64,000 bases of DNA from Entomortierella parvispora E1425 (GCA_020891255.1 BQFW01000007.1:620001-684000); one strand, 5' to 3'; positions 45,194 to 55,900 are shown, numbered from the stretch's first letter. Notes: a model not told the origin generated them from the letters alone. Numbers and translations: made by a program.

Positions 45194-46470
45194 GGACGGC
45201 GCAGAAAGTGAATTAGAGGAATGTAGCTTTGAGAGGGTTCAATGCAGGAACAATGGACACAAGAGCTCAAGCACATGCCAAAAAAAAAAAGAAAAAAGAA
45301 AAGTTGTTTACAGGAAAACGGGACTGCCAAAAACACCGCCACCAAATATTTTGAGTGTTCCTGCCCAGCTCTTGACTTTTGAGTCCTCCAACCCCCGCTC
45401 TCCTTCCTACCTTCCTACCTTCCTACGGGTGTTTTTACCTCTCTGTATCGGCCTCTCTGTGTATGTGAGAAGCTGGACAATGGTTTTATTCCTGCGCAGG
45501 CTTGTGTATGCTCAAGAGAACGTGCTTCTATTGCCTTAATTCATTCTGAAGATACACCATGTTGCTACCTCTTTTCCCTGGCACTTAGACTTGGGAGTTG
45601 GACGCGCAGTGGGAAACTTGACAATGGTAAACATTGACGGTAGCTTTCTGTAAACAGTTGGAAGACAGCTGAACGAGAGGATGGCAACACTCTGGCTATA
45701 AGGAACGGCATATTAACTTCAGCCCGCCAGGCGGTTCGGTGACGTTTTATTCGCGCCCAAAGTCCCGACACCCAAAATCTTTTTGTTTTTGTCAAAAGTG
45801 AATTGCATTCGACCGAAGGCGATTTGATTCCTCCACCCCACTCTTTGGTAAGGATCGATGCATCAACTCGAGTCGCGAATCTACACTTTCACAACTGCAG
45901 GAGTTTCTCGATATTTGAGCTGCAGGATTCCGTAAAAAAAAAAAAAAAAAGGCGAACAATGTCGTCTTTTTAGCAGCTCTTTGCAGGACACGATTTCACC
46001 TTGGTGGCGGATCTATAAGCGAACTCATCAGGGACAGGAACAGACGAGGAAATACCTACCTATGTATCAGATGGAGCGTCAGCATAGCACCAGGGAGGAG
46101 GGTCCTAACTGGAACCCAAGAAAATGCTGTTATTTTCGGACGGTTGCATTTGAAGCGCGATATCGAAAATTGACGGCATTTTTGAGAGGACTACGGACAT
46201 ATGGAGACCAGCTATGACAAAATGGCGAGCGTTTCTTGACTTTTATGGTTGGAATACTGGGAAAGCACTCATAGTTATGACTGTGAGCGCCGACCGTTGT
46301 TCTACGATCGCATTGGGGAGAAAACCAGGAAAGATGTGGACAAGTACCTACTGGGCAACAGGAGGAACGAAACTCTTGGAGACACAGCATCTAACCTTTC
46401 TCTCGCCATGACTACATGGTTCCTTCTCTACACAGTATATCCTCCCCCCGCCCCTCTCTATATATTCACC

Positions 46471-47130
46471 ATGAACCCCGAGAAACTCGCTAAGCTCCAG
46501 GCTCAGGGCCGTTCCGGCTCCAAGGGTACCCCCCGCCGTGTCATCAAGAAGGTCCACCGCGCCGTCGCTCAGGATGACCGCAAGCTCCAGGGAGCTCTTG
46601 AGAAGCTGGCCTTGTCCAACTTGCCTTACGTCGAGGAGGTCAACATGTTCAAGGAGGACAGCACCATCCTTCACTTCCGTGCCCCCAAGGGTAAGCCTTG
46701 CTATACCTCAGGAATCCAAAAATGAAGGAAAATTGGAAAAACAGAGTCCATGGGAGGCAGGAGATACTTGGATCTCATGCCTGGACAACTCGGAACGCGT
46801 GCGACAGTCTTTAACACCTCTTTGTTCCATTTTTTTCTGGATTTCTTGCGAATAGTCCACGCCAGCACCACCTCCAACACCTATGCCGTCTACGGTCGCG
46901 GTGAGGAGAAGGAGATGACTGAGCTCGTCCCCGGTATCTTGAACCAGCTCGGACCTGACTCCTTGGCTTCCCTCCGTCGCCTTGCCCAGTCCTACCAGCA
47001 GTCCGCTGCCGGTCAGGCTGCCATGGCTGCTTCCGGAATCACTGCCGAGGATCTCGCCGACGATGATGAGGTCCCTGACTTGGTCGAGAGCTTCGAGGAG
47101 GCTTCGGTCGAGGAGGAGGCCAAGGCTTAA
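46471..47130 (+). CDS. EGD1: Nascent polypeptide-associated complex subunit beta, 2 exons
   Basis: [10 protein letters not shown]...[12 protein letters not shown]...DDRKLQ...[10 protein letters not shown]...HFRAPK | VHAS...[15 protein letters not shown]. Confidence 0.97.
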
Positions 47131-47766
47131 AAAATCTGTCCCTCTTTTATGCCTGGCTCCAAAATGGAGTAAAATTCACAAGTGTTTTTTGAAATAAAAA
47201 TATTCAACCAAAAAAAAAAAAAAAAAAAAACGACAGGATGAAATGAGTATTCTACAGACGAACTTCTCGAAATGAATAATGTCGTTTTATGGAGTTCATT
47301 TATTATGTATAATATATTAGTGTTATTGTGTTTGCAGGGTGCAACTGCGAGGGGCATCAGTAATAAAAAATATCCTAGGTTTTTTTTTGGAAATCTGATG
47401 GCCTGAACCATCAGCTATCGATCATCCACTCGTCCTTTCTTGCTCCTTTACTTTCCCCGCGCCTTTCCTTTCTCACCATTCCTGCTTCATTAACTGAATA
47501 TTACAAACTACTACTTTTCTGCACTCCTCATCATCTATCACTGCCCTTGGACACTCAGAGCTTGCCGTCACTGACTGTAAGGATCACGCTCTATGGACAA
47601 AATCTATCTTTTCGAGACAAGGCTTTTGGCATATGCACTGTGAAAAAGGCGCAAACTGTCGTTGTCCTCTTTGGGGCGGACTCTTAGCTCCATCAGGAGA
47701 GTGAACTGTAGTCAGCATAGTACATATCCATTAACTGAAGTTGCGTAATCGCCTTTGGTGTCATAG

Positions 47767-50700
47767 ATGGGCGTGGCCAGCACCTGGCCGTATTTGGCCA
47801 ACATCGAAGGCCTGGAGTATCCCGAAGTTGTGCCCAAAGATGTTTTCCCGAGAGTCCACATCGACATTCCTGCTATCTTGTTTGCGCTTGTGAGAAGCAT
47901 CCGCTGCAACAAGATCTTTGCGGAAATGAAAAATCACATGAACTCCTCGGCCAACCTCGAGGCGCCCTACATGCTTCCCGCTGAGATCTCTCTTTTTTTG
48001 ACCAAAGTCCCTCCTCTTGAGACTGATGCCATCAAGAGCAACACGGAGTTTTTATCACTGATCGGCTCCGAGTCTACGCTCCCTCCAGTCCCCTCGGCAA
48101 TATTTGAGATCGACATCTCGGCGGCGATCGACAAAACACTGTTGAAAAAGTTTTCTAAAGACCAAGGAATACTCCACTTTGACGGCGCCAGAACTATTCA
48201 AAAGACATACGCCCGCCAGAAAAGAGATCGTTCTCGAATCGGAGCGATTGCAGCGTTTGTCCACAAGGCATCATCCGTTTTGTCCCATCTTGCCCATCTG
48301 CATTCGCAAGTGTCCCTGAAAACTGCAGCCGGAAAGGCCAAGCCAACAAAGAACCAAGTACTTCGGTTAGTGAAGAGGATTCGCGGCCCACTGATCAAGG
48401 CGTGGATAAATACAAAGGCAATCTCTCATAAGGACTGGGACACACTTGGCAATCAACTCGGCTCAAAGGGATGGAAGGTACACGCCTGCCCAGGGGAGGC
48501 TGATGTTTGCATCAGTAGGCATGCTGAAGAAGAGCAGGAAGACACTGTGGTTGCGTCGGCTGATAGCGACAATGTTTTCCACGGAGCTTCATACGTACTG
48601 CGCAAAAGTCCTCAAGGCGGCCGGTATTACAAATATGATATCGGGGCGATCCTCGGGAGTCTTGAGCTGTCTTATGAACAATGGCAAGCTGTGGCAGTTC
48701 TGGCAGAGAATGATTACGATCGAAAGGTCCCCGGCCTAGGCCTTACCAAGATTGTAGATACCATCCGCGACATGGACGAAATGCCAGACATGCCAAAGGC
48801 TGTCGACTACGTCAAGAAGTTCTGCTCTCAGAAGTCGATCGATCAGGCTGTCTTTGAGAACAGCGTGGATATCTTCGTCGACAATAAGCAGGATATAGAC
48901 ACCGGCATCATATTGGAGGATAATGCGGCAAAGCTCGTCGACCACTTGATGCTGCATATCGTGAATGAAGTCTCCAAGCTTCGATATAGGTAAGTGTCAA
49001 GAGTTTGTCCTATTGAAAGGCACTCAAGGACAGCAGTACTGACTTGTTTTCTCCCCTATGCGATTTCTCAAACAGGAACAAGCGGACCAAACCAACCGCA
49101 AGGTAAGATATCTCAAATTGTCACTCTTTTTTTTTCTTTTCTTTTCTTTTCTTTTCTTTTCTTTTCTTTTCTTTTCTTTTCTTTTCTTTTCTTTTCTGAA
49201 CGAATGTCATCAATCCGTCCTTCATCAGGTCAAGCGCCTCATCATTGCCTGTGGTCCCGGAAGGAGGAAGCTCAAGTCAGACAGAGACTAAGCAAGGGTA
49301 TGGTATCATATTGCTATGCAGAGAGAAAGCATACCATGCCGAAGATCCCTTTCTAAACACTACTGCACTTTATGAATAGCTTTCTGCGATTCATGTGGGA
49401 TAGAAAGCGGCCAGACTATCTTTCAAAGATTCGGCATCATGATCGCACAGCTTGGTCGGAGAGTCTTCCCCCTGGCTGGTCTAGGAATGAGGGACCCGTG
49501 GGGCTATACGATCAGTCCATAGGCCCTCCAAAAGTCCATCCCGTCGCTCCGAACGCAACCCACACCAGCAACTCTGACAACCAAACTGGATCTGCACCAC
49601 TTGCGACGGATCTAGTCAACCAGAACTTGGAAGGTGACAACCCAGCAGGTTCATCTTCGATTCCTACTGCCTCAACCAGTCAGAAGCGTCCCCTTTCGCA
49701 GGAGGCAAGCCAAAAGAAGAAGAAAAAGACAAACGAAAAAAAGGCGGCTACCTCCAAGCCCGTTTACAACCGTTCAAGCAGAAAGGCGCGACATGCTGTA
49801 AACAAACAGATGGGCGACTTGACGTCTTCGGCTGGCTCAGTCACTGCGACAAGGAGGGAGCACGATACCACGCACATTAAAGCTACTCTGGAAACAACGT
49901 TTTCCCAGGTGGCACTCCAGCCGGGTACTCTGTGCTCCACACTTTACAAAGGGCTTGAAAGCCAGATGAAGGGATCGACACTATTGGAAGTACAGGATAC
50001 GTACCGATCCATGCGGACAATGATGATGGACCTGGTCAAAGCAAACTCTGACGCAGTTTGGTCGGCGATTGCGGTATTGCAAGACTATGCGCTGTCTATT
50101 TTCAAGTCTCACCCCACACTTGACGAAGACGACGTCAAGAAAAGAAAAGATGCACTTGGTCCAGTCTACACAAGTCAAATCTTCGTATATCATGTGGTCC
50201 GGGCCCTTTGGAGATGGAGCGATCTTACAGACGCTACCCTCACTCAGCTCAAGTGCGAAGGCACACAGCGGCTTGCGTTTACGGTGGTACTGGAGTTCAA
50301 AAAGAAGCATAGCAACCAGCAGGCCGGCGGGATCCCATTTGACCCCTTTACAAAGAGACCAGAGAAGGCGGTCAGCGCCAAGTTCTTGGAATCTTGCGCA
50401 CGCAGCACGCACGACTTAATCTGCAGCCTTGTTCTGAGAAACGTCGGCGAACTTAAGCAACGAGTAAGTGCTTGACATTCATGGTGCAATGTTTAATGGT
50501 CTTTATGTCTTTGCTCGTCGCTGACTCTTGTCTCTGTCCTGTTCGCTAGGTTCTTGTCCAGCAGATACAATTCTCAAAGTCCGAGCAAGGACGACTTTTC
50601 CTGGATTCGATTGAAGGCACTGGTCGGTCAAAGTTGCACGATCCCGTATCCGTTCACTTGCTTCTGAACGCGTTACTGCGACCCGACAGTCAAGTTGCGC

Positions 50701-52714
50701 TATTTCCGGTAATCGCCTTCAAAGACCGGGACCTGGACCTAACCGAAAGGGAGTTCGTTGATGCATGCCGACACCTCAAACCTACACCAACTACAAAGAG
50801 TGCACTAGGTGCAGTCTTCACTGGAACGGTCGTGGCCGCCGAACAGCGAGCAATCGCCCACAGAGGGGAGCTATTTTTCAACTTATTCATGTCGAAAAAT
50901 ACCTCGTACAGACGTGGCACTGCTCTCATGAACCCGGCCATGAACAGTGAGCGCGCTTTGTTCATCCCTGATTCGCGCCTGAGAATTCAAACAGAGCTGG
51001 AGCACCTGGATGAATACACATCAATCGACAAAACACTCTGCGCTCTCCTGAAGGAATGCTCCAGTTTGGCTAAAAAACAGGACCCAGGGCTGGCAGATTC
51101 TCAAGACTTACTCCATCGTATCTCGGTGTTTCAGGGGCAATGGTCACAGCTTCCTGGTAACCCTCCCCCCACCATCGCGAACATCCATACGACTAGTGGA
51201 TCAATCTCGAACGCCCTTAAGTCGATGGAGGTTGAATTACAACGGCTGAAGGACGTTTTAAGCAACATGTCAGCTACACAACAACGACAACTGCGAGACG
51301 TGACTCTACATGGTCTGCATGCGGGGTCGAGCAGTAGCGCCGAGAACACACCTCGAAGACACTATGTTCCGACGGGTGTCATCAAGACGGACGGTCATAA
51401 CCTCCATGTGTTGGCTTTTGATTTGACCACATTACGCCCAAAGAAGAATACGAAGAGCAAGCCCAGTCCTACTGGCAGTGGTTATCAGCACAATATCCCT
51501 GCCGTAGCTCCAGAGGAAGGTTTTCTTGCTCTGCCTTCCGCTCTACCTTTTGCTGCATCTTCCGCTTTACCTTCGTCCTTGGATATATACGACTCAGAGC
51601 TTTGGACGTCTCCTGATCCTGTGCTGGAGGAGAGCCTGCCTGGAAGTGAGACTGAAAATCCTAATGAGGGTCCCAGTGTTGGACATGGAAATCCAGGGCA
51701 GGGACAGGTGGCACAGCCAAACCTCGCAGGCGTAAAGACTGCAGCAGTACATGCGAAAGCCCTACCGTATGTCCAGGACCTCTTTTCAACAGCGCAGCGT
51801 GTTCAGTCTTTGGGTGGCCCGCATTTTATCGGGATCGGGGTAGATCCAGGCCGGGCGAAACCTGCAAGCGTGGTCGCAGTACACACCAAGTACCCTGACT
51901 TTTCACAGACCCTCGATATCACCGACACCGTGGCTAAAGACATTCAAAAGCGATACATGGGGTGTCTAAACGCAAAGAAAAAGACCCACGGGATCGACAA
52001 ACTGGAGAACACATTGATTGCAGATGTTGCCCCCGTACAAGTGAAGGTCACGCAGGAAAACGGAACAACAGTTTGCGATTGGAGGGCAGCTGCCAGCGCA
52101 CTCTATAGTAACCACTTAGACTGGCTCAGACCTCGCCTCGCTGCATTTGAGAAGCTAAGGACCTTTTACGGATCAATCAGTTTCAAGAAGGATCTCTATG
52201 ATATGAAGACGGCGATCCGAAGCGACAGAAGCCTGGTCTGTGCAGCGGCTATCAAGATGGCGCATATTCCCCACCCGAATATTCCACCGACTGATGTTCT
52301 AGAGTATCGAGAGACGCCAGCCGTTCTTGGAATAGGTGATGGGGACTTTGACGGCCGAAAGGAAAAAACCTTGGACGAACTAGCGCGGACAGTAAGTGTT
52401 GCTGGAGTCGATTTTCAAAGAGAGTAAAGGTTGTTGGATCTAACATCTGGTTCTCTTATACATTATAGGGGAATGCCAATGGCATCCCAGCGGTGAAGCT
52501 CCCGGAGTTTCGATCCAGTCAGTTCTGCAGCCGATGTCGCTTCCGGGCAGTTCAGAAAGGCAGATCCATCCTCTGTGAAAACTGCAGTTGGGACATCGAC
52601 AGAGACCATAACGCCGGCGAAAATCTCGCCAGATGTCTGGGTACTCACCTACAAACACAGACATGGCCAGCGCCTCTCGACAAAGCGCTCGCCAAAGTTC
52701 ACTCGCGCGAGTGA
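47767..52714 (+). CDS. XPG/FEN1-like PIN nuclease fused to a Fanzor/TnpB-like RuvC nuclease, 6 exons, ~1,496 aa
   Basis: Exons 47767-48989, 49076-49102, 49229-49297, 49380-50463, 50550-52391 and 52469-52714, all GT-AG, total 4,491 nt, frame continuous. PIN motifs: MGV, HID, HFDG, GEAD, SADSD, NDY, PGLG. Fanzor motifs: IKTDG, GVDPG (D 51843), IGDG, PEFRSSQFC (E 52505), CxxC/CxxC, DRDHNA (D 52604). Confidence 0.85.
49132..49196 (+). repeat. (TTTTC)13 microsatellite in intron 2 of the PIN-Fanzor gene
   Basis: Perfect pentamer tandem array read directly. Confidence 0.95.
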
Positions 52715-52949
52715 GGCTCATGTGGAATGAGCACAACCTTCTTTACAGCATCGGTAAGTGCAACAAAAATCCGAGGACAAAAGCACAAACCTTTTTATTT
52801 TCAACTAATTTATTCTCACGTCTTTATGCATTTCGGGAAGTTTAGCTGTATCGTGGACGATTGTTTATTACATTGATGATGCTGTTCCCCTCCCCCCTTT
52901 CTTCAACCCTCACCCTATATACGTGTTTAGTGTTGTGTCTTCAAAGGTT

Positions 52950-55900
52950 TTACAAGACACCTTCGCCGCCTTCCTCCTCATACATCTCAACCTCCTCTGC
53001 ATCCACAACTACGGCCGCGGTGAGATCCTGCCCAGTGGCACCCCCCGTGGAGGCTGCTAATGACGAAGATTGGATCACATTTGGGTCTACTGGATCCACA
53101 ACCTTGCGCCATCCAGACTCTTCATTATCGTCACGAACCATCTCGGTTGTTGGCCTAACAAATAAAAGACAAAAGTGTAAGAAACCGAGATTTCAATGAA
53201 AGAAACAAAGAAAGAACATTGACAAACATCACGATCAGCTTACCAGTAGTGCATATTCGTCTTAATACTCAAGACTGTGGGGATCATATCAAAGCTCATG
53301 GCCTTGACTCGGACATAAGAGTTATCGGGACACTGCTTCACGGCCTTCAAGAGAGCGTCCAGATCGGGTGTGGGTGTTCCATTGATATGTGTCACCCACA
53401 TGGTAGGAACCATTCCATACATGAATGAGGGACTGCCTTTGGACCGAGCAGAGACGTAAACTCTGCTTGGCAAAGCTTTGCTCTGCTGCAATACTGCCTT
53501 GTGGGGTTCATGCATCATGGCACCAGCCCAGATAACCAACCGACTCGTTCCAGAACCATCGACCACCTCTGTTGGCACTGTCACCTTGACCTCCACCTTC
53601 TTCCTGAGAACCACAACTTCCAGCTCTGCAGCATCGTATTGAACGTCAAGCTCATACATACGAGTGATGACCTTGCCATTGATGCTGAGAATCAGATCCA
53701 GCTCTTGCAAAATCGATGCAGATACAGATCCAGTCTCTGTCCTGCGGATCATAAAGATATGATGACGGGCAGGGTTGGCCTCCTCAACCTTCTTGACCCA
53801 CTCGTCCGTCAAACCCATGTGGCGAGCCTGCGCCATTTGAACGGGCATGACCTCAATGTTCAAGTTGCGCAACTTTGGGTAGATGCCCTTCTGCATTGGC
53901 AGGAGAACGGGCATGATTGTCGAGATGTGCAAGCCCAGATGGTACTCATTGTCCCGTCCCGAGCTGTTGCGTTCACCCAAGTAAGACAACCACAAGCCCT
54001 GAACACGACCTTCGCTATCCGCCAAGACACCAGAAGAACACTGCTGAGCCAATGGAGTATCCAAAGTGATGGCATCCAAGTTGATTCCACGGAACCTTGG
54101 TGTAGCGTTGTGAGGGATTGTCACGCTAGTGATATCTGTCACAACAGTCTTCAAGCAGATGGGTCTTTGGTTGTGGTTGAACGCCACCAACGAAACCTGA
54201 TGACCCTGGACCAAGTAAGTAGGCGAGATTTTGGCGGACTGAATTGGTGTACCTCCAATGTCGGCGGGGTTATAGGAGACGATAGCAAAGTTGTGGGTTG
54301 GGTGCAAATAAACCACCTTTCCAGGAACAATGATAGAGTCTGCGATCGTCACGCTCAAGTCACCCATAGCGAAAGGAACAATGTTGCGGGATACCACAAT
54401 CAATCCGCGCTCAGCGTCGACAACCAATCCAGCTCCATATTTCTAAAATTGATGTAATAATTAAAAGTTAGACATTGATCAAAATATGTGATTGTGCACT
54501 AATTCTTTGCTCAGAGAGAGCCCTTACTCTGCTCTTGGGAAATCCATCGATGCGGCAAGGCATGTAGTAGCTGATTTTGACCATGCAGCTGAAAAGTTCC
54601 TTGGCTGGTCCCAAAGACTCGTCCAATTCCAAAAATTTGACTGTGGAGGGCACAATGGCAGTTGGGGGTGCGGGCGCGCCCAAATTGGTAAAGTCCCAGA
54701 GTCCTGTGGTGTCGTTTCTGACAGCAAGGCGGAAACGGCTCCAGTGACGCTCTACTTGAACCACAGCAACACTAGTGGTGTGCACATCTCCGATTGAATA
54801 ATAGACGACGGGGATGCGCTCCCGATCCGGGATAGACTGCATCACCTCAATAAAATCGTTCAGGTTGTGGATCGATCGGTTGTCGATTGAAGACAGCATC
54901 CAACCACGGTCGGGCCCTTCAAAACGGAACATGCCGCTGGGCTCTGACACATAGACACCGCCGACAGGGACACAGAAGCTACGAGCAAGCTGGTAACTGA
55001 GTTCGTTCAACTTTGCTCCTCCAATCTCCACATAGCGGTCGGGCGTGATGCTATGCAAATCCTGTACTGTAATCTTGAATCGTCTCTCCTCGCCTCCGCG
55101 CTCGGCAACGATTTCGATCTCCTTGCCCACATTACGATCCAGGCAATCCTCCAGTGGTACGAACTTTGTAATCAGCTCATCATTGATCGAAATCAAAATG
55201 TCGCCCTCTTCCAAGAATGTCGAAGCTGGTCCCTTGGGAAGAACGGTCTCTGCGACAAGCATACCGATCTCTGCTGGGAAAGTACGACGAATGGTTGCCT
55301 CAGTTTCGGGGTTCAAGCCCAAGCGACGGGTCTCGTCGAAAGGTCTGTAGATGAACTGTGTCTGAATGGTGCCTCTGGGAACTGGCTTGCCCTCCTGAAC
55401 AAATGATAAAGCGCGACGGACGCGATCCAGAGGCAAAAAGAAGTCTGTTGCCCCGCGAGTGCTACCGCCAGCCTGAAGAGCCACTGCGTTTCCGTTGATA
55501 TCAATGACAGGTGATCCACTGGATCCTCCACTGGTACTTGAAGCAGCCTGCAGATAGAAGGTGCTATCACATGGGAATAGATATGAAGATTAATAAACAA
55601 AAGACAATTGACTGACTGGTTGAGTTGGCATGAGCTTGGTTTGGCTTGGGGTCCTTACTTGAAGTCGTTGTATGTCAAGTCTCCATATTCAGGTGCATTC
55701 CTATCCAGTCGAGAGATGGATCCTGACAAGATAGATAGTTTTTCTCCTGCATCGTTACCCACAACACGGATATCAATTCCGACCTTGGCTCCCTCAGGCG
55801 ACAGCTTGATGGCTGAAACAGGCATGTACTTGATCTTGGAAGGGTCAAACTTCAAAATACTGTCAAGAGATAAAACGCCCAAAAAAAAAGGTCAACAAGA

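Follow-up and report, generated by a model that had tools for sequence, protein, structure and literature searches.

The subject of this report is a locus on the + strand (47767-52714) of a 64,000-nucleotide stretch from the fungus Entomortierella parvispora E1425 (GCA_020891255.1, BQFW01000007.1:620001-684000). That whole stretch is called the window here, and positions are counted from its first letter. The locus holds what the evidence supports as one spliced gene, in which a PIN nuclease of the XPG/FEN1 type is fused to a Fanzor1 nuclease of the RuvC type. This FEN-Fanzor gene is the only gene of a 5,594-bp element (47255-52848), which is a non-autonomous DNA transposon of the Tc1/mariner type. 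Several lines of evidence make the case for a single fused gene: introns are conserved, homologous open reading frames (ORFs) run without interruption, some contigs resemble transcripts, and both profile searches and predicted folds agree with it.

An ORF scan of the window yields four + strand pieces (47767-48993, 49372-50475, 50634-52427 and 52493-52714). An earlier note on this DNA had joined them into one gene of 4,491 nt and about 1,496 amino acids, and that model was reproduced exactly with five GT-AG introns of 77-126 nt: the six spliced exons (47767-52714, +) give 4,491 nt and 1,496 amino acids with zero internal stops. The donor is GTAAG in four introns and GTATG in the third. A homologue on the metagenome contig L001 (62% identical, 1,508 amino acids) has its pieces in matching order, and contigs of a sequencing run termed X2, described below, cover several of the junctions. 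The parts of the gene are as follows.

47767-48989, + strand: exon 1, predicted FEN1/EXO1/XPG-like 5' nuclease domain, amino acids 1-407
48990-49075, + strand: intron 1, 86 nt, GTAAGT...CAG; position as in L001; cleanly absent in an X2 contig
49076-49102, + strand: exon 2, 27-nt mini-exon encoding NKRTKPTA; present in a 1,532-nt X2 contig
49103-49228, + strand: intron 2, 126 nt, GT-AG; position as in L001
49229-49297, + strand: exon 3, 69 nt, encoding SSASSLPV...; in frame
49298-49379, + strand: intron 3, 82 nt, GT-AG; acceptor GAATAG/CTT kept in L001
49380-50463, + strand: exon 4, basic linker with a K-rich tract resembling a nuclear localization signal (NLS) at amino acids 552-557, followed by the first stretch of the Fanzor part
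50464-50549, + strand: intron 4, 86 nt, GTAAGT...TAG; position as in L001; cleanly absent in an X2 contig
50550-52391, + strand: exon 5, predicted Fanzor1 WED/REC, RuvC-I (D1233, GVDPG) and the Gly at the RuvC-II site (IGDG)
52392-52468, + strand: intron 5, 77 nt; position kept family-wide and in L001; absent in an X2 contig
52469-52714, + strand: exon 6, relocated RuvC-II Glu (E1428, PEFRSS), CxxC-CxxC zinc ribbon, RuvC-III (D1461, DRDHNA) and stop

All five intron positions and phases are identical between the window and L001, and the introns themselves are 46-64% identical in sequence (shuffled level 41-51%). The mini-exon 2 has 27 nt, is in phase and is bordered by AG and GT in both sequences alike. 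Exon 3 has its homologue in an L001 exon of 87 nt whose donor motif is identical; a previous model with four introns (1,473 amino acids) was replaced once the comparison with L001 had revealed this additional 69-nt exon. Exon 4 aligns collinearly with the long homologues described below (their residues ~470-700), and homologous proteins align without gaps over the intron 4 junction. Within intron 2 lies a (TTTTC)n microsatellite (49121-49205), at which X1 and X2 reads seemingly break.

Runs X1 (DNA) and X2 come from one sample, the kind of X2 being only guessed. In X2 contigs, the introns at 48990-49075, 50464-50549 and 52392-52468 are removed to the base, and one contig of 1,532 nt connects exons 1, 2, 4 and 5 and so bridges the FEN and Fanzor parts. 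At ~400x word depth, X1 contains solely the unspliced form and none of the splice joints. Because the introns are cleanly absent in X2 and X1 holds only unspliced sequence, complementary DNA is the simplest reading of X2.

The N-terminal part carries the motifs of the FEN family in order: HID (D33), FDG (D139), GEAD (E244/D246), DSD (D266/D268), NDY (D316), PGLG and a K-rich tract. All seven active-site carboxylates of the FEN1/XPG (Rad2) family are present, and D33, D139, K146, R153, E244, D246, D266, D268 and D316 are invariant in 12 family members that are 23-71% identical. Every motif of the metal-binding set listed in the earlier note was recovered. K146 and R153 stand at D139+7 and D139+14, matching the spacing of the gateway Lys and Arg of FEN1 (K93 and R100). 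The assignment to FEN1 relatives held up by both profile and structure. Searched against all sequences of the PDB, the family profile matched solely FEN1, EXO1, XPG, GEN1 and Rad2 (best 1a76, E 2.3e-7), and a single-sequence search gave a weak match to the archaeal FEN-1 model of NCBIfam (E 2e-4). An AlphaFold2 model of the domain reached a predicted local distance difference test score (pLDDT) of 89.4 and a predicted template modelling score (pTM) of 0.86; its top match by Foldseek in the PDB was human FEN1 on flap DNA (E 6e-10), followed by EXO1, XPG and Rad2 (to 1e-5). The Pfam result is less favourable to this assignment: XPG_I was matched with an E value of 3.5e-4, but its 21.4 bits lie below the gathering score of 24.9, and XPG_N was not reported. 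The helix-two-turn-helix (H2TH)/K+ motif is poorly conserved; the window has PGLG where relatives have PGQS. Taken together, the motifs and the model predict that amino acids 1-407 are a divergent, complete 5' nuclease domain of the FEN1/EXO1/XPG type.

The C-terminal part shows the Fanzor motifs in order: TDG, GVDPG (D1233), IGDG, PEFRSS (E1428), CSRC...CENC and DRDHNA (D1461). The Fanzor/TnpB motif of Bao and Jurka (2013) is D-X(125-275)-[TS][TS]-X-X-C4-X(5-50)-RD (PMC3627910). In the window the spacing from D1233 to S1431-S1432-Q-F-C1435 is 198, and the CSRC/CENC pair is followed after 5 residues by R1460-D1461. The canonical RuvC-II position is occupied by Gly (GIGDG, amino acids 1395-1399), with E1428 in LPEFRSS ~30 residues downstream, a pattern also found in the homologues P0040 and P0014. 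In Fanzors the canonical RuvC-II Glu is replaced by Gly or Pro, and an alternative Glu downstream is conserved (PMC10530073). The earlier note had read a Fanzor from RuvC-I, the Gly-type RuvC-II with its relocated Glu, the CxxC-CxxC finger and DRDHNA, and each of these features was found. The last exon matches Cas12f1-like_TNB of Pfam (E 1.1e-8) and the NCBIfam models IS607_TnpB and IS200_TnpB (~3e-6). A phmmer search gave 40 relatives.

A profile of the Fanzor half gave zero Fanzor matches among PDB sequences; the zinc-ribbon/RuvC-III region of P0040 reached Cas12f/TnpB with an E value of ~0.01 in a profile search of the same database. Since HMMER could not tie the family to solved Fanzors, a comparison of folds was adopted. 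The modelled chain was residues 480-1273 of the homologue P0040, with the window rows included in the alignment (pLDDT 77.5, pTM 0.78), and its top solved matches were SpuFz1 (E 1.5e-10, TM by target 0.57-0.59), GtFz1 and PpFz1, with Cas12m, Cas-phi, Cas12f and TnpB ranking below the Fanzors. The structural likeness to SpuFz1 was thus recovered through a collinear homologue. It counts against the assignment that the modelled chain is that of P0040, which is ~24% identical to the window protein; the window chain is read as a Fanzor1 by fold because all motif blocks align collinearly with P0040. On the model and the motifs, amino acids ~600-1496 are assigned to a Fanzor1 with a predicted RuvC nuclease.

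In the ESM Atlas, the neighbours of the FEN half by features and shape are XPG-like proteins of giant viruses and poxvirus G5. The nearest clusters of the Fanzor part are annotated DUF8286 or Cas12f1-like_TNB and include a giant-virus DUF8286 'transposase'. Because the nearest Atlas neighbours of both halves are giant-virus proteins, the two-nuclease module may have originated in giant viruses; a scan of viral contigs yielded zero relatives of the FEN domain.

The joining of the two nucleases is not peculiar to the window. Among 1.8 billion representatives searched with phmmer, the long relatives (1,104-1,273 amino acids) are collinear with all four pieces; gene models from Podila epigama, Benniella and two Mortierella species are among them. 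In four metagenomic ORFs that were predicted with no splicing (P0010, P0012, P0022 and P0024), FEN domain, linker and Fanzor part share one frame, which ends exactly at the position of the window's last intron, and L011 shows the same layout in an uninterrupted ORF of 1,196 amino acids. Both halves are present in every relative with enough sequence context. The exceptions, L018 and L019, hold fragments only. Three relatives, P0006, P0007 and P0017, seemed to have a Fanzor part alone, and the contigs of the latter two were examined. P0007 proved to be a piece of the same kind of split gene, since on its contigs L022 and L023 the Fanzor ORF is preceded by a FEN-like one; the contig of P0017 (L024) is too short upstream to judge. 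Word-index protein searches, with region 1-400 of P0040 and with a nine-sequence full-length alignment, returned P0040 alone and gave no information on distribution.

Both active sites, which the earlier note had judged to look intact, have their catalytic residues present and invariant across a family that is 22-30% identical. Against L001, the FEN domain has a ratio of nonsynonymous to synonymous substitution (dN/dS) of 0.12, the linker one of 0.13 (exon 4 0.13-0.15) and the Fanzor parts ratios of 0.09-0.15; these values are rough because dS is saturated. At about 0.1, they indicate that both halves are under purifying selection. The fusion is natural and ancient within the family, and judged from the available sequences the linkage of FEN and Fanzor parts appears to be obligate across it.

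The earlier note had also guessed at a mobile system, and this guess proved well founded: the gene lies in an element with terminal inverted repeats (TIRs) and a TA target-site duplication (TSD) that is found in several different flanks. Its parts outside the coding region, with the two segments of a candidate omega-RNA discussed below, are the following.

47253-47254, unstranded: left TA TSD; TA at either end of the copies in the window, L001 and L020, whose outer flanks are unrelated
47255-47285, + strand: left TIR, starting CAGACGAACTTC
47286-47766, + strand: 5' region, presumed promoter and 5' untranslated region
52640-52850, + strand: candidate omega-RNA scaffold, comprising ORF end, 3' tail, right TIR and TA
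52818-52848, + strand: right TIR, ending GGGAAGTTTAGCTG
52849-52850, unstranded: right TA TSD, as the left TA
52851-52866, + strand: presumed guide segment, flank read into the predicted omega-RNA by analogy with Fanzor1 RNAs

The TIRs measure ~30 bp. Of the first 40 positions at the left end, 26 agree with the right end read as its reverse complement, a number reached by 0 of 10,000 shuffles, and the copies in the window, L001 and L020 each carry the core AACTTCNNNAAATGAATAA in inverted orientation at their two ends. These shared TIR/TA ends of L020 and L001 replaced the first boundaries drawn (left at 47401 or 47613; right at 52850 without TIRs). Homology in the 5' region extends to L021 over 47401-47582 (78.5%) and to L007 from 47613, with a block shared by L001 and L007 from ~47577. 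On the right, similarity to L001, L002, L008 and L020 ends sharply at 52850, each with a different flank, and X1 and X2 contigs that represent other copies depart from it at 52850/52851 and continue into two additional flanks, which makes five or more different right flanks. L001, L002 and L008 are copies from a related fungus, 99.6-99.9% identical and in different flanks. Relative to the L001 copy (L001:4812-4906), the L002 copy (1-178) lacks the outermost 95 nt on the left. Insertion of L002 beside an older copy was considered and rejected: a 12-nt string CTGGTGATCATT in the left flank of L002 recurs in the right flank of L001 (11690-11720), and the remainder is at chance level.

Besides full copies, truncated and internally deleted ones occur in different flanks. 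L020:230-2593, ~2.4 kb, joins codons 1-59 to codon 484 onward and keeps both TIRs, and L021:9430-10580, in the assembly GCA_020891255.1, is a deleted copy without the FEN part beside a 14-3-3 gene. The element encodes no DD(E/D) transposase and has no other long ORF within it; it is non-autonomous for want of a transposase of its own. The window contains one copy only, located between the 3' ends of two host genes: a protein with a nascent polypeptide-associated complex-type (NAC) domain (46249-47130, +), whose stop lies 124 nt before it, and a PDZ/trypsin-like protease (53240-54427, -). We hold the architecture and mobility of the FEN-Fanzor element with very high confidence.

Fanzor1 RNAs have a three-stem scaffold that includes TIR and TSD and extend ~15 nt past the TSD (PMC10711439; PMC10432273). 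The 3' layout of the element fits these published RNAs by analogy, but some of the conservation seen there could be due to the TIR by itself. In the non-coding tail (136 nt) the identity to L001 is 74%, compared with 46-64% for introns and 48%, the shuffled level, for the next 136 nt of flank. Synonymous divergence from L001 is reduced in the last exon (pS 0.51 vs ~0.69 elsewhere) at an amino acid identity of 83-86%, which would fit an overlapping functional RNA. Three hairpins are common to the window and L001, one of them spanning the stop codon. Other observations weaken this reading. The four sequences compared show zero compensatory base changes, the window folds with a z-score of only -0.57 (L001: -2.6), and the conserved tail overlaps the TIR, which the needs of a transposase alone would conserve. 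An Rfam scan of 47300-53000 gave zero matches.

The left flanks of the window, L001 and L020 all have C before the TA (TTC/TA, CGC/TA and ATC/TA), and the right end reads TG/TA. The target-adjacent motif (TAM) therefore probably ends in CTA, which would separate an empty site from the GTA of an occupied one; that only three left flanks are at hand tells against this guess. The TAM of SpuFz1 is CATA (PMC10432273).

Compared with known systems, each half has clear affinities and clear departures. SpuFz1, GtFz1 and PpFz1 (8gkh, 9cez, 9cer and 9cf0) share the fold of the C-terminal ~790 amino acids of the homologue P0040, although similarity at the level of HMMER is limited to the zinc ribbon/RuvC-III. 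The window protein resembles Fanzor1 in its RuvC-I Asp, Gly RuvC-II with relocated Glu, C4 ribbon, RD, introns and NLS-like tract, and in having its gene on the 3' side of a TIR element whose 3' tail is conserved. Most Fanzor1 proteins have 600-700 amino acids, the sole added domain described being the RuvC insertion of PpFz1 (PMC11423790). The window protein differs by ~600 extra N-terminal amino acids that include a predicted complete second nuclease. Among mobile elements, the mariner-type Fanzor1 elements ROr-1/2 and MCi-1 of early-diverging fungi are alike in TIRs, 2-bp TA duplication, Fanzor cargo and, mostly, the lack of a transposase, and their Fanzors have 686-928 amino acids (PMC3627910). 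The same 2013 survey described Mucorales Fanzor1 proteins of 1,150-1,375 amino acids with 'highly variable N-terminal regions' and did not cover Mortierellaceae (PMC3627910). The strings GEAD, GEAE, FDGK and FDGA are missing from its supplementary protein file, so the FEN-type domain was probably outside that set.

With FEN1/EXO1/XPG (Rad2), the N-terminal domain shares the seven carboxylates, the gateway Lys/Arg at D+7/D+14, an MGV start and the fold. It differs in its low identity (13-16%), a ~60-residue insertion between the first Asp and FDG, a weak H2TH, its fusion to a predicted RNA-guided nuclease, its transposon-borne setting and its nearest Atlas neighbours, which are giant-viral and not cellular FEN1. 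The human EXO1 (hEXO1)-Cas9 editor, T5exo-Cas12a and T5E-SpuFz1 likewise tether a 5' nuclease of the FEN superfamily to an RNA-guided cutter (PMC11107001; PMC8945719; PMC13434818); those are man-made, whereas the window fusion is natural and, by its substitution rates, under purifying selection.

The earlier note knew of no characterised Fanzor with a flap-endonuclease-like domain, and the apparent novelty stands so far as the searchable full-text literature goes: no natural fusion of this kind was found described there, and no paper was found that pairs Fanzor or TnpB with XPG, FEN or Mortierella. The architecture is already in databases, unrecognised, among NCBI 'hypothetical proteins', in a JGI ORF named 5'-3' exonuclease and in AFDB A0A507C583 (855 amino acids, 'Cas12f1-like TNB domain-containing protein'), whose residues 5-285 match the FEN model and 572-836 the Fanzor model. 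The best match to the FEN model in AFDB is A0A1Y2GEP5 (1,083 amino acids); both are uncharacterised entries. A further AFDB entry, A0A168L3J8 (1,101 amino acids, 'Ndc10 domain-containing protein'), matches the Fanzor model over residues 423-1086 and looks like another N-terminal fusion to Fanzor1, of the Crypton/Ndc10-like kind. On L001 an NDC10_II ORF lies at 921-2099, outside the element.

We propose the following course of events. The 3' end of the element, from the last exon through the tail to the right TIR and TA, would give rise to an omega-RNA with ~15 nt of flank serving as guide; loaded with this RNA, the Fanzor part would cut those copies of the same site from which the element is absent. 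The tethered 5' nuclease would then trim or resect the 5' strands of the staggered break, leaving 3' tails that would channel repair to homologous recombination with the element-bearing copy as template, so that the element would be copied back (homing) rather than lost through end joining. Moves to new TA sites would need a Tc1/mariner transposase acting in trans. SpuFz1 cuts the non-target strand after bases 16-17 and the target strand after base 20 or beyond (PMC10432273), and since such positions give staggered ends, a 5' nuclease would suit the break. A Cas9 editor based on human EXO1 raised homology-directed repair (HDR) and lowered non-homologous end joining (PMC11107001). Against the proposal stands the reduced editing of a T5 exonuclease fused to SpuFz1 (PMC13434818), which means that the benefit of a tethered 5' nuclease is not automatic. 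As a whole, an explanation that combines a transposon, a two-nuclease protein and RNA-guided homing with resection seems to us likely. The specific role of the 5' nuclease in resection for homing, argued by analogy, is a tentative suggestion that falls somewhat short of an even chance. We put forward slightly more guardedly still the idea of a natural 'cut-and-resect' RNA-guided nuclease, in which the FEN-like domain would turn a Fanzor break into a recombination substrate and allow homing without a transposase.

A rival explanation, which we consider unlikely but worth keeping in view, is that the 5' nuclease acts on the R-loop or on RNA, either clipping the displaced strand or a 5' flap to aid the RuvC cut or processing the omega-RNA at its 5' end. 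Enzymes of the FEN family are structure-specific, with flaps and RNA-DNA junctions among their substrates, a habit that favours such a role, as do the FEN1-like placing of the gateway Lys/Arg and the top structural matches, which are to FEN1 bound to flap DNA. The GEAD motif of the window, which is of the EXO1 type, points the other way. So do the characterised Fanzor1 enzymes, which cleave both strands without a FEN-type domain (PMC10432273). Between this role and resection, the present evidence fits both alike.

Considerably less probable is a reading with two products, in which alternative splicing gives a FEN-like protein of ~422 amino acids and perhaps a separate Fanzor, the fusion being minor or absent from this copy. 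It draws on the X2 contigs, and here the transcript check of the junctions gave a divided answer: three of the five introns proposed are cleanly absent, but the one contig that spans the region skips exon 3. It joins 49102 to 49361, 19 nt upstream of the conserved acceptor at 49380, omitting 49103-49360 and leaving intron 2 unsupported. In window letters this joint meets a stop six codons on and ends the product at amino acid 422. The transcript evidence for the fusion is further weakened in that X2 is not a run of known RNA kind and that the contig linking FEN and Fanzor exons is ~95% identical to the window, and so comes from a paralogue or another strain; the same origin makes it a poor witness for two products from the window copy, and the joint could reflect alternative splicing or a paralogue-specific site. 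The four relatives with FEN and Fanzor in one uninterrupted ORF, the in-frame five-intron model conserved in L001 and the apparent purifying selection on the linker (dN/dS 0.13) all argue for a single fused protein.

That the gene is a domesticated host repair nuclease or an inactive, decaying relic unlinked from any mobile element would agree with the single copy in the window and the lack of an internal transposase, but is hardly credible beside an intact ORF with all catalytic residues, preserved TIRs and TA duplication, copies 99.6-99.9% identical in different flanks of a related fungus and same-organism copies that diverge at 52850.

No eukaryotic RNA-guided DNA nucleases are known other than Fanzors, whose role in nature is unsettled. 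A Fanzor permanently joined to an intact 5' nuclease suggests selection on what follows the cut, namely end processing and the choice of repair, and the two separable active sites make the idea of homing by recombination directly testable. Tethered 5' exonucleases on Cas9 and Cas12a serve to raise HDR or enlarge deletions, and the approach failed with SpuFz1 (PMC13434818). The natural FEN-Fanzor pair with its linker offers a co-evolved, ready-made design for study; if the proposal is true, it would be evolution's counterpart to engineered exonuclease-Cas fusions, working with a Fanzor where the T5-exonuclease fusion failed. For the family at large, it indicates that the 'variable N-terminal regions' of fungal Fanzor1 proteins can conceal entire enzymes.

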